DNA from: Magallana gigas
Lineage: Eukaryota
Length of the DNA: 64,000 nt
Assembly (NCBI RefSeq): GCF_963853765.1
Contig: NC_088855.1
Coordinates: 22,072,001-22,136,000, forward strand
Direction: 5' to 3'
Shown here: one piece after another, positions 858 to 7,000 of the stretch
Numbering within the stretch: the first letter of the stretch is position 1
Layout: each line of letters begins with the position of its first letter
The notes under the pieces: model-generated
What the model was told of the DNA's origin: nothing
What the model saw: only the letters and a program-made list of their open reading frames with translations
Databases searched by the model: none
Translations under genes and position numbers: made by a program

Positions 858-1091
858 CATTACACATGGCAGGATCTCCACTCCATGAACCATTACTTAG
901 ACAGGTGCGGGTCAAATCGCCCCCAGAATGATTGAAACCCGGAACACAGGAGTAGATAGCCTCACTACCAGTGTAGTAGGTTTGTTGAGTTCCGGTTCCG
1001 TTGGTGGAGAAAGGTTCACTTACATTGGAGCGTGGTTGGTGAACAACAGTTCCAACATTGTCAGGTAAAGTCAATGCTGGACAGGTAATCA
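858..1091 (-). CDS. Gene B exon 12: duplicate long-loop sushi/CCP (S9 type)
   Basis: 234 nt, phase 1-1; 20 nt differences from 4387-4620 (about 91% identical), with homologous flanking intron. Confidence 0.9.
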
Positions 1092-4000
1092 CTGTTGTAA
1101 GATTAGATAAAACATCTCAAAAATATCATGATAAATGAGTAATTTTAACGCAAAAACTTTGTTAAGTAGAATTTTTTTTTCACTGCAAACTGTAAAAATA
1201 TATCAAATGGAAAGGAGGATGCAAAAAATTTAAACTTATTATATGTAATTAGACATTTGTAAAAACGAGAATCTTTGCGATCCGATTTACCATAAACAAA
1301 CAAAAAATTAATTTTGTGTGGACTAACACATATACAACCAATCCAATTAATGCACTTCATAATTGATACATGTAATTTTAAATCTAAATTTAAGTTTGTT
1401 CATAGTTTATACTTTTATAATCAAATTCTTAATTTGTTTGCTTTTTCTGAAATTGATTTTATCTATTTAAGTGTTCAATAATCTTCTTTTAGGTATTTTA
1501 AAATTGGAATAAAAACAGCATGGCTGAAATATATTGAGGAGTGGGCATGGATGGAAAATATTACAGAAATGGATGATATATATACATTTACGTGGCCTTA
1601 ATTCTGTTCGTTGCAGCTAGCTGAAAAAAGTAGCAAATTTTTTATTCAATTTCAAATCAGTGGGTCGGTATTTAGTGCGTCGTAATCTAAATTTTGTTCT
1701 ACAGGTCAAATTTAACTATAATTTTTGTCACTGTTCCAAATTATTTTTTAAGATAAAAGACTATTCAACTTCCCTGTTTAATGAATACAGCATTTATTTA
1801 TCCAATCTGTCGTGTTGCATATTTAGTTGCATCTTTTAAACCAACGTTGTCAGATATAAAGTATCTGCTTAATGGTCAAGCGCACCCTTCTGTTTCCGCC
1901 ATGACGTTATTAGTCTAACCGCGTTCCTCGACATCCCCGTTCTGGAAGGTTCTTTCCATCAAAACTAAAATCGTATCAAATTAATCCATGTTATTTATTA
2001 GTGTTTTTGTTTTTAAATTTAACTAAAGATTGCCCATCCAAGGTATCAGCCTGCGATGCATGACGAACTCGTCCTGTCAACCCCGGTCTGGAAAGTTCTA
2101 TGCCATCTTTTCACCAGAGCATCTATCCATCAAAAGTAAAATCGCGCATTAAGGAAACGAATTGACTTACTTCGTTTATTCAACATTTGTCAAATCTTCA
2201 TTTTTATGTACACCCTAAATAAGTTCACAGTAAATATATTCACTCTTTTAGTTATCATTCAATATTATTTCACTGCAAGTACATATTTTGATGCAAACTC
2301 CCACTGTCTTGGATCCGTCTCTATCACCATACTTTTATTTTTTACTATTTCGGGCTGGTTTATCGAAAATGAAAGTAGGTTTTTAATTTATTTCTCAATG
2401 ATAAGTTATCAGGTAAAATTTAATGATAGCTTACGGAAATCATGTCACACGTGTTGAAATACGACAGATATAAGAAGTCACTCTGGTGCTGGCGTTTCGT
2501 TCATGTAGTTCATTGGCAAAATGTCTTACTTTTTAAGGATAGACATTGACAGGCTAAGTATAATATCGAAAAAATTTAAACTCGCTAAACTATATTTCTC
2601 TCTTTTCAATAATCATACAATTAATCATACAGTGTCGTGTCGTGTCATAATTTAAACCGCATTTTTCCAATTCAATCATTGCTTTTTATTTTTAAAATCG
2701 AACCATTACCGTCATATTCTTCGTTAATTTCCAACACATGAAAATTTATTGTCCTTATTTACATATTTTTTATATCTTAAATAAAGTTTTCAGTAATCAT
2801 AGTCATATTGCAGGTACTGATTAATTATAAAATATGTCAAAAAGGATAATAAATCCAATTCTCTTTCACAATATTAAATATATTCAATAAGGCTAACTGA
2901 AGCGTACCCAGACAATTTGGCTGTGTCCCGTTCCATGTTCCATCTATTTGACAAAGAAGGGAACTAGAACCATTTATCTGAAATCCTGGGTTACAGGAAA
3001 ATGTGGCAGTAGTGTGTACTGGAATCCCCATGGAGTTTGAAACGTTTGTTGACAAGGCAAAGATAGACACTGCTGTTAGCGGCTCACAAAATATTTCTGC
3101 AAAGTCAAATAGTGAACAAATTATTCAGTTTGTTAGACAAGTTGTGCCTATACTCTCGTATTTTTTTAATTTTTTTTTTTTTTGCTTTTTCTTAAAGTAG
3201 CTCTACTAAAGGTATTTGGGAATGCAGAAGGCATATGGTTCAAATAATACTGCCATTGTCATAATCAAACAAGTTACAAATTTGACGTTTTGTAAACATA
3301 TTGTCCCGTCATCTGGCAATATTAATCATGATCTATTTTAAATCAAAATGTTTGTTTAATGATTATGAATATTAGGTTACATCAATACTAGTCAAGGGTG
3401 AGCTGAATACTATATATTTCCTTCAACCTTGTTGACCGATGGGCTTTCAACTCCATAAAGCTACTTGATCCGAATCTTTTTAATTTTTAGGGTCTTCCGT
3501 CTTCAGCGGAATACCCTACTATTATTCTATTGTTTCTTTTTCACTTTTCTTATTATTCTTTTTATTCTTTTTTTGTCTTACAAATTTTATGCAGGCGATT
3601 TCTCGAAGATGGCTCATTCGATTTTCTTCAAATTTTAAGGGTTGATGTGTCGGCATCTGAAGTTTGTACCGCCGTTTCCTTTTTTTGATAACCACTTTCG
3701 GTCGGAAGTTATCGTCCGTTTACGATTTTTTAAAGTCAATTTTGTCGGCTAGAGATCCAAAGAACGAATAAAGATATAGGGCTGACATTTTCAGTGAGGA
3801 TAGACATTAATTTTACCTGTTGCAACATGGTCATAAAAACATCCGCCGTCACTTCCGGTCGTCACCGGAAGCAAAGATAAAAAATCGGTTTTTTCAGCTT
3901 TTTGCTTTTTATATATTTTTCTAACGGGTTGATAGAGACTCTTTTACTGATTCAGAATATGTAATTTGTTTTGAAATCGATTGATGTGTTCCTGAGATAT

Positions 4001-7000
4001 TAAGCATCTAAGTCCTGAAGCGAGAGTCCGAGTAGCACAGTCGTTAGAGTCGTGGACATGTGCCCAAGCGACCTGGGTTCAAGCTTGGGTGCCGAAATTT
4101 TTCCCCCTAATGTTTTGAGTTGATTAACAATTTAGTTTTAAAAGTGAAGGATTTTATCTCATTTACTCATAAATCGGACGGAAGACCCACTCGTTGCTCG
4201 CAACGAGAACGATCTAGTTATGTAAATGTTTGTACGTTGTAAAACAATTGAAAATCAATGAGGGGGAAAGGGAATACCAGTGAACCTTGTTTAATGTCCA
4301 ATAACCAAATAATTAAAACTTTGGCAAGAAAACGTCGGTTTGGGGGGGGGGGGGGGGGTTCGATTCTTGTCTTTAAAGAATTTTACCATTACACATGACA
4401 GGATCTCCACTCCATGTTCCATTACGTAGACAGTTGCGAGTCAAATCGCCCCCAGAATGATTGAAACCCGGAACACAGGAGTAGATAGCTTCACTACCAG
4501 TGTAGTAGGTTTGTTGAGTTCCGGTTCCGTTGGAGGAGAGAATTTGATTTCCATTGGAGCTTGGTGGGTGAACAATAATTCCAACATTGTCAGGTAAAGT
4601 TAACGCTGGACAGGTAATCACTGTTGTGAAATTAAATAAAACATCTCAAAAATAACCGTGATAAGTGAATGATTTTAATGCCAAAAAAATTATTTAAATA
4701 GGTTTTTTTTACTGCAAACTGTAAAAAATATATTAAATTTGGAAAGGAGGGTGCAGATCAAAAATTGGAACTAATAATATGCGATAGAATTTCTGTAAAA
4801 ACGAGAATCGTCGCGATGCGATTTACTATGAATAAACAAAAAATGTTTTTATGCGGTCTTACGTACACATAAAACTAATCCAATTCATGCAATAAATGAC
4901 TTATACGTGTTATTCTAAACTTGAATTTGTTCATACTATAGACTTTCTCTCCTATGATAAAATATGTATGTATATACGATTATAGTTATAAATCAATGTA
5001 ATTATAAACTAGTAGGATTTTAAAAATGAATGCAAAAACATAATTAAAATTAAAATTAAAGAATCAATATATCTTCTTTTTATTATTCATAATTTTACGC
5101 TACAGAATATCGGCAATACTTCATTTTATTTTATTGATTTATGATTCGATGGGTACTGTGTAGAACTACTTTAATCTCGGATAAAATGTCGTTGAATGAT
5201 AAAGATTTTAACATCACGTTTAATTCAGATTTTTTTCCTTCATAAAAGAAATTGTAACGTCAGTTTCCCTCGGGATATTATGTTTTATAGTGCTTATAGG
5301 CTTTACTTGTAAAAACTCCTCCCGAAAATCAAGGGCCAGGAATATTCGAACTTTGCAGAAAATACCGGAATCCTCTTAAAATCTATTAATTGTGAACATT
5401 CAAATGAAAGCAAGTAACAATTGTTTCATATCTTTGAAGAAATGTCCTCACGTTAGTTTTTTCATGATTTTGAGAGGATTTCATGGTTATTCAGGTTTCA
5501 GTAACTACAGTAAGAGTTATTTCCCCTTATTGTAACAGAATTGTAACGCCAGAGTTCACGTCGGTTTTGTGTCGTCTTGCTCTTAAAAAATACCCCTGAT
5601 TATTAAAACTGCGCATAGTATATTGTTTTATTTACCTAAAAAGCATGCCGTTATTGCAATTATACATTTTATCAGGTTCTAAAAGTTTTACTTTGATTCT
5701 CGCGAGAACGTGAGAATACCATTTGCAATGCTTGGAATTGCATTGTGTATCGAAATACTGACACAGAAAAAATCTAACCGATCAATGTGCAAGAAAACCA
5801 TTGTGACGTCACACGATTGTATTTAAGTTTAAAGGGCGATAACTTATTTATATATTTTTCGTGTATGTTGTGTCAGCAGTATATTTACATGTACAATGCA
5901 TGTGCATAGTCTTTAATTATTTTTATCTTGCTTGTTTTCGTGAGAACATAAAATGGGAAACCATATTTACAGGAAACTGCTGGCCCGATAAAACATTGCA
6001 ATACTGGTCCAAGTAACTGACGCCAAAAATTCGTTAAATGAATGTGCATCTGGTCTGAATTTTCTATTCACACACGCCTTGCATGTTTAGCTCGTTTCGC
6101 TCGCTATTACACGTTGTAAACTTGACAGAAATAACGAAGTTCGCTTTTAACGAAGTAAGATCGTCCGTCCTTGGCACTTCGTTATAGGCGTGTTTTACAG
6201 TATATATTGAGAGTAAGTAAATCTTGGTAATATAATATTGTTTTAATTGCTTTAATGATATGTAGTATTTTCAACCATTTCATTCTAAGGTCAAATTTTG
6301 AACAAACGGAGACTGCATTTATATTGTTCTATGGTTAGTACAAGTACTATGGGACACCTGCCGATATTGATGTGGATATACATAATAATAAAAAAATACT
6401 TAGACCGTTTTAATGTTTTCAAATTTCCCCACATTATAAGAGATTTGCCAAAAATATGTTTTAAACATTCGGAAAGAGAAAAATTATAAAACGCCCAGTG
6501 GGATTCAAACTTATGACCAAAAGAATCGTAGCTAACGTTCAAACCAATTTCGACATGTTATTAGGTAACAATTTTGGAGGTAAACAGTTATGTAAAATTA
6601 TACTTGATTTTATTATTGATTTCAATAGAAAGTATTTCACAATATAGAGGTATCCCATACCACCTTGAACAGGAAAATTCGGATAAACAGGCAAATGTAC
6701 TGCAGCTACATGTAGCTAGCATACAAAAACTTATTTAAACAGAAATACATTCTTGTGAGAAGAGTTTGTTTTTAGGTTTCTACATTTTATTCAATATTGT
6801 CAGTTGTGACCTATATATGTGCCCCTCCTAGCTCAAATCTATGTTCTATGAACAATGACATAGAAATTACGTGAACAAATGGGAGAATCCCCGCTCCAAC
6901 TCCCATTTAACAAACACTTCCTATTAAGATTTCCAAACGTATGTTCGAAACCAGCTTTATAGGTGTATGTAAGAGTGCCATTTACCGAGTAACTGCTTAT

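Follow-up and report, generated by a model that had tools for sequence, protein, structure and literature searches.

Two tandem Sushi/CCP exons of Magallana gigas with a fast-changing hypervariable-loop insert, a conserved core and mosaic copies

The stretch of DNA analysed here, referred to as the window, comprises 64,000 nucleotides of Magallana gigas (NC_088855.1, positions 22,072,001 to 22,136,000). It is AT-rich, with a base composition of about 31% G+C, and its minus strand carries at least 14 one-exon Sushi/CCP modules split over two tandem paralogous genes. Two of these exons, A and B, belong to a duplicated unit within one gene and differ mainly in a 16-codon loop. The elements on which the analysis turns are the following:

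858..1091, minus strand: exon A, one CCP/Sushi module of 77 codons in phase 1-1 with the A-type loop (translation, Pfam Sushi, RNA contig, Foldseek)
4387..4620, minus strand: exon B, a paralogous CCP module with the B-type loop (translation, Pfam Sushi, 91.5% nucleotide identity to exon A, intact splice sites)
1003..1050, minus strand: loop of exon A (TVVHQPRSNVSEPFST), with an N-x-S sequon
4532..4579, minus strand: loop of exon B (IIVHPPSSNGNQILSS), without that N-x-S sequon
672..1364, minus strand: copy A of the duplicated unit, the exon flanked by intron over about 270 nt upstream and 185 nt downstream (BLAST self-match)
4220..4895, minus strand: copy B of the duplicated unit, upstream end approximate (BLAST self-match)
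2909..3094, minus strand: a different type of CCP exon within the same gene, located between B and A, with approximate bounds

Exons A and B each measure 234 nt, are bounded by AG/GT splice sites in phase 1-1 and encode 77 residues. Both match the Sushi family of Pfam (PF00084), exon A with 37.9 bits and exon B with 35.6 bits against a gathering cut-off of 20.7; the match is limited to residues 26-76, the N-terminal part of the module being interrupted by an insert. The four cysteines and the tryptophan between the third and the fourth (C3, C48, C63, W69 and C76) are invariant or nearly so among 26 aligned modules. These residues, the coding of one module by one phase 1-1 exon and the beta-sandwich fold are shared with the Sushi/CCP/SCR modules of factor H, factor B, C2, beta2-glycoprotein I and E-selectin, from which A and B differ by a Cys1-Cys2 spacing of 44 residues, which exceeds that of the gene's own 55-residue CCPs by 19; the likeness does not imply a relation to complement. 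The 19-residue insert lies at the position of the CCP hypervariable loop and contains the 16-codon loop, in agreement with the initial annotation of this DNA, which had placed the latter in the hypervariable region between Cys1 and Cys2.

The AlphaFold2 model of exon A has a mean predicted local distance difference test score (pLDDT) of 78, with values around 50 for residues 21-31 and a strand at residues 12-17. The 16-codon loop is therefore the end of a strand followed by a low-confidence and probably flexible excursion. Its earlier description as exposed and unusually long is supported by the length of the insert and by the low model confidence, as for a flexible exposed loop. When the model was compared with known structures by Foldseek, the top 16 matches were all CCP-containing chains, including beta2-GPI, factor B, C2, factor H and E-selectin, with a probability of 1.00 and template modelling (TM) scores of about 0.6-0.68, the best E-value being only 4e-3.

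A contig from RNA run X17 coincides exactly with 858-1091 (positions 18-251 of its 297-position record) and continues at both ends into sequence unlike the introns, which shows that exon A is expressed with the borders given here. Exon B has hardly any coverage by RNA contigs, and the splicing of B is not readable from them. We also considered that A and B might be mutually exclusive duplicated exons and rejected this, because they are not neighbours: the CCP exon at about 2909-3094 stands between them, all three being in phase 1-1. This intervening exon has its Cys1-Cys4 motif at 2912-3088 and is paralogous to 27193-27381.

The differences between the two exons were recounted from the reference sequence. 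The 20 nucleotide differences listed in the initial annotation were reproduced, as was their partition into 11 within the loop (A coordinates 1005-1049), all replacement and amounting to 10 amino-acid changes with Pro to Ile taking two, and nine outside it, five silent and four replacement. Counted by the Nei-Gojobori method, the loop has 11.8 silent and 36.2 replacement sites with 0 silent and 11 replacement changes, and the core has 42.3 and 140.7 sites with five silent and four replacement changes. The differences are clustered (scan test for at least 11 of 20 in some 48-nt window, P=0.011), and the ratio of replacement to silent changes differs between loop and core (Fisher's test, p=0.008). 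The view that loop and core are under different regimes thus holds, both by this test and by a likelihood-ratio test (LRT, p=4e-5). At loop site 1022 the Val of the reference is a minority allele, since four runs and two contigs carry the B state, Gly, at the A exon; the same four runs and two contigs also carry the B state at silent site 961. Discounting 1022, A-type copies differ from B at 10 loop positions.

Differences of this kind could arise if the two exons were alleles of one locus, or from sequencing errors, a possibility that the initial annotation had itself raised. Oyster genomes are highly heterozygous, and the best public holders share only 64% of the 31-letter words of the region, which would leave room for assembly error or haplotype collapse. 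However, the outer flanks of the two exons differ, and the copies are separated by 3.5 kb in which a further CCP exon is located. Run X1 provides error-free contigs on the flanks of A (688-937 and 1077-1863). Two independent genomic contigs (L001 and L004) also carry the A-type loop, as do RNA contigs of two runs, among them the one that coincides with 858-1091, and the B-type loop recurs letter for letter in contigs L002 and L003. With both loop types exact in independent runs, an artefact of this sort can be ruled out for practical purposes and is extremely improbable.

Homology between the copies is limited to 672-1364 in A and 4220 to about 4895 in B, identity being at chance level beyond 1364 and below about 672. 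Within the unit the introns of A and B diverge by 19% upstream and 26% downstream of the exon, or 21.4% when pooled. The comparison was extended with short Logan contigs retrieved via open reading frame (ORF) fragments (L001-L004 and L006-L010); 11 further copies were available, 13 in all. L001 is A-like throughout. L006-L010 come from a more distant oyster, species O (74% amino-acid identity), and represent five haplotypes that differ from one another by about 1%; in this species a long-loop exon is followed by an exon of the 2909-3094 type (contig L006). Because the introns of A and B are closer to each other (87% identity near the exon) and O is equidistant from both (about 80%), species O is an outgroup to the duplication, which is younger than the split from O.

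Several of the further copies are mosaics. L002 and L003, from two different runs, have A-locus flanks on both sides, the outer upstream flank being 85% identical to A versus 52% to B and the downstream flank 95-100% identical to A. Between them lies a B-like tract at 1363-910 that is 91-100% identical to B (91-92% in the intron, 98-100% over the 5' end of the exon and the loop); in L002 an A-like patch is present at 1128-1072. These observations derive from a site-by-site table and from identities by segment on short k=31 contigs. The 5' switch in L002 and L003, located at the edge of homology, cannot come from a k=31 assembly chimera, because the sites flanking it are only 2 nt apart, and the 3' switch, in the near-identical middle of the exon, may be chimeric. 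L004 (1-1353, corresponding to window 1856-672 and then 3489-3302) is 99% identical to A over 1856-1003 and B-like from 910 on, and then runs on into the B-locus intron at 3489-3302, skipping about 3490-4217. The reference has two copies of the A/B exon; L004 may be either a recombinant or three-copy haplotype resulting from unequal crossing-over, or a chimeric k=31 contig joined through the near-identical mid-exon.

Among A-locus-like contigs, 18 of the 20 A/B differences are variable, the exceptions being 897 and 889. In the mid-exon (906-1002), A and B do not differ by any replacement and A and O differ by seven, which fits homogenisation of this segment between the two copies. Both signs of interlocus gene conversion, a tract of one locus between flanks of the other and polymorphisms shared between paralogues, are found here. 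Taken together, the L002 and L003 tracts, L004, the shared polymorphisms and the mid-exon show that the copies exchange sequence and that the loop can travel with the exchange. Gene conversion sparing the loop had been suggested earlier; conversion between the two exons is real, and the sparing is not, since the B-like tract of L002 and L003 (about 450 nt) takes in the whole loop.

To judge the rate of change in the loop, the introns of the unit provide a neutral standard. Loop divergence is 22.9% versus 21.4% in the pooled introns (p=0.85), and the replacement divergence (dN) of the loop, 0.30 per site, is 1.4 times the intron value (range 1.2-1.5 times, p=0.21). In the core, silent divergence is 0.12, somewhat below the intron value (p=0.17), and dN is 0.029. 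The pairwise data show a constrained core beside a loop changing at a roughly neutral rate, and because the flanking introns are just as diverged, the pairwise count of 11 replacement and 0 silent differences is no proof of selection. With O as reference, loop sites 1049, 1037 and 1017 are derived on the A lineage and 1032, 1019, 1014, 1013, 1011 and 1005 on the B lineage, the polarity of 1047 (Ile/Val, also polymorphic in O) and 1022 being ambiguous. Both lineages have thus changed since the duplication, B more than A. Three-point branch lengths for the loop amount to 3 changes for A, 8 for B and 6 for O, where intron rates predict 4.6, 4.8 and 8.2; the total of 17 compares with 17.6 predicted.

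In the explanation that we favour, A and B are tandem copies of a single-exon CCP module with a 19-residue hypervariable-loop insert and form part of the CCP stalk of a membrane protein specific to oysters. Purifying selection would hold the CCP core. Patchy exchange between A and B, by interlocus gene conversion or recombination, would keep the copies alike in places and transfer entire segments, among them the loop. At the tip of the insert, a flexible and weakly constrained surface loop would accumulate replacements roughly as fast as the introns, taken as neutral, and more quickly on the B lineage. We give about an even chance to weak loop constraint, purifying selection on the core and A-B exchange jointly explaining the pattern. 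The duplication, the mosaic alleles and the rates are observed directly; we infer weak constraint, not adaptive pressure, behind the changes in the loop.

A number of results weigh against this explanation. The B lineage has 8 loop replacements versus 3.6 expected from the introns (Poisson estimate, p about 0.03), and over the 13 copies only 1 of 18 loop steps is silent (binomial p=0.043). Codon-model likelihood tests on three taxa and 16-44 codons, which use chi-square approximations and ignore recombination and the choice of window, put the ratio of replacement to silent rates (dN/dS, omega) of the loop at 3.9 when silent rates were shared (p=0.002, with p=4e-5 for heterogeneity) and at about 7.5 when the loop was taken by itself (p=0.013-0.022), and that of codons 15-33 at about 8 (p about 0.01). 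In addition, L003 is identical to copy B of the window over the 97 nt of 1098-1002, and the adjoining 245 nt of intron are about 9% different. Poisson estimates put the probability of such identity at about 2e-4 over the 97 nt and at 0.013 over the loop taken separately. Identity beside a diverged intron suggests either purifying selection acting on the B-type loop or a short conversion tract of very recent date.

The first rival explanation is adaptive diversification, in which the loop would be a recognition surface, positive or balancing selection would make and keep the two types, purifying selection would hold each of them and conversion would shuffle them. The LRTs for omega=1 on the loop alone, on codons 15-33 and with shared silent rates point in this direction, as do the 17 replacement and 1 silent steps in the loop against 20 and 13 in the rest of the exon. 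None of the eight A/B-type copies has an intermediate loop, and the B-type loop shows no difference over its 48 nt beside an intron differing by 9%. The A-type loop is likewise identical in the reference exon A, L001, L004 and two RNA contigs, except at 1022. In species O the exon holds five replacement polymorphisms and one silent one, three of the five replacements being in or beside the insert. The changes also toggle two N-glycosylation sequons, and a CCP with a long hypervariable-loop insert and known ligand binding exists in TGM-D3 (PMC9163516).

The two variable sequons of the insert are N22-x-S and N30-G-T (window 995-1001 and 1019-1022). The A type and most O haplotypes have N22-x-S; the B type and those O haplotypes that carry Arg24 lack it. 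For N30-G-T, the reference A, the reference B and L001 have the sequon, and L002-L004 and O lack it.

Against adaptive diversification stands the rate itself: the dN of the loop is only 1.2-1.5 times the neutral intron rate (p=0.21), and an omega of 4-8 would predict a divergence several-fold that of the introns. Values of this size would conflict with a loop evolving at the intron level, unless the silent sites of the exon were slowed or homogenised. The region was picked post hoc, with 16-19 codons from three taxa as the basis of the tests; extended to all of the Cys1-Cys2 region, the LRT gives an omega of 2.1-2.4 with p=0.09-0.16. Tests for dN/dS above 1 therefore span nominal p values of 0.002-0.16 depending on region and neutral standard, uncorrected for a post hoc window or a multi-nucleotide event. 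The pairwise absence of silent changes among the 11 in the loop has p=0.044 for a window chosen post hoc, and a counting test against neutrality on the insert defined beforehand (codons 15-33) gives p=0.080. The ligand-facing role is hypothetical, and exon B is the one barely covered by RNA contigs. The diversifying selection proposed in the initial annotation is consequently not established: the enlarged set of copies is compatible with a loop dN/dS near 1, which would count against it, as well as with a higher one. We regard adaptive diversification as possible but on balance doubtful.

A further explanation for the excess of replacements is a clustered-mutation artefact. Judged by the outgroup, six to seven of the loop changes occurred on the B lineage, and five of the B changes (1022, 1019, 1014, 1013 and 1011) fall within 12 nt, so that a single complex or templated multi-nucleotide event could mimic a replacement excess. 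Multi-nucleotide events inflate tests of positive selection, and scoring the B cluster as a single event brings the counting test to p of about 0.11, which also counts against adaptive diversification. On the other hand, no donor for the B loop was found elsewhere in the 64-kb window at up to 3 mismatches, and the A and O lineages likewise changed almost only by replacements (3:0 and 5:1). We consider it quite unlikely that a clustered event accounts for the pattern.

One more elaborate form of the adaptive idea is that the two loop versions would be discrete recognition cassettes, both kept and each held constant by selection, and moved between exon positions by gene conversion. We judge this improbable, if somewhat less so than a clustered-mutation artefact. 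If it were true, oysters would differ from one individual to another in the combination of loops, and of their glycosylation, carried by the stalk of a surface receptor specific to the lineage, and this would form a small germline system that diversifies a CCP binding surface.

CCP scaffolds with long hypervariable-loop insertions are known from TGM-D3 and HpARI of Heligmosomoides polygyrus (PMC9163516, PMC5655542), and in TGM-D3 a 23-residue insert is part of the ligand-binding site (PMC9163516). A and B resemble both proteins in having a long hypervariable-loop insert in an otherwise CCP-like domain, with no sequence relationship beyond the fold. In TGM-D3, however, the insert is structurally ordered and its binding is demonstrated by experiment, whereas the tip of the A/B insert is modelled at low confidence.

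Tandem CCP repeats and genes evolve in concert by gene conversion or unequal crossing-over, as in the long homologous repeats of human CR1 and the CFH/CFHR cluster. These systems are like A and B in having tandem CCP-coding units, mosaic alleles and polymorphisms shared between paralogues; the A/B unit differs in that it consists of just one exon plus about 450 nt of intron, lies within a single invertebrate gene and is known here from short contigs. Fast hypervariable loops and the concerted evolution of tandem CCP units are thus both already known, and a literature search on oyster Sushi genes with gene conversion or positive selection returned nothing relevant. On the present evidence, the locus is a well-documented case of a fast, weakly constrained loop, a conserved core and exchange between tandem exons. 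Were the loop under selection as a recognition surface, it would indicate where a receptor family found only in oysters faces its ligand, and tandem exon duplication with gene conversion would yield receptor variety within a species in an animal without adaptive immunity.

Regarding the protein that carries these modules, searches with exon A, exon B and fragment P0054 returned four short Logan-contig ORF fragments only, with no annotated full-length protein. An exhaustive protein search (top 150, dominated by giant multi-CCP proteins) did not reveal a full-length protein with the long-loop exon either; it added fragment P0054 and one family member, P0085, encoded at locus L005 (L005:10001-15928; GCA_033153115.1, JAVQLB010000054.1). 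P0085 has 422 amino acids and contains five CCPs followed by CxCxC, a coiled-coil and a transmembrane anchor. Because none of its five CCPs has an A/B-type long loop, the long-loop module may be confined to a narrower lineage. Entries P0151-P0157, P0054, P0001 and P0002 are ORFs running through intron and exon on short genomic contigs and are not real proteins, and in the O contigs an in-frame TGA is read as Trp in database ORFs. A metagenome scan for a conserved 23-mer gave no match.

Two further features of the window bear on the surroundings of the duplicated unit:

28364..28579, minus strand: third long-loop CCP exon, in the neighbouring paralogous gene
3490..4188, no strand assigned: high-copy insertion resembling a miniature inverted-repeat transposable element, in the intron downstream of exon B (word depth, terminal inverted repeats)

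The third long-loop exon has 43% amino-acid identity and an insert of similar length, and its loop is not alignable with that of A or B; as a candidate outgroup for the two exons it was rejected, its loop being too diverged. The insertion at 3490-4188, about 700 bp long, has a word depth of 10^4-10^5 in all four runs and perfect 12-nt terminal inverted repeats, GGGTCTTCCGTC at 3490-3501 and GACGGAAGACCC at 4177-4188. The downstream intron is directly continuous with window position 3489 in L004 as well as in the outgroup contig L006. The insertion appears to be polymorphic or recent, because these two contigs skip about 3490-4217, the segment that holds it.

Both introns are filled in large part by high-copy repeats. 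Long G/C homopolymer runs lie at 786-842 and 4337-4360, just downstream of the two exons on the coding strand; their length varies between copies and between contigs, and reads are apparently cut there. A dispersed repeat of about 650-700 bp occurs in three copies with 66-76% identity (8-687, 44758-45449 and 62182-62856), the first directly downstream of exon A, where the following exon of the gene, beyond the start of the window, may be masked by it. A run of N is present at 55656-55783. Younger dispersed or tandem repeats pair 60181-60741 with 63420-64000 (89% identity) and 35165-35748 with 54185-54768 (95% identity), the latter pair containing internal inverted repeats at 35171-35327 and 54187-54351.

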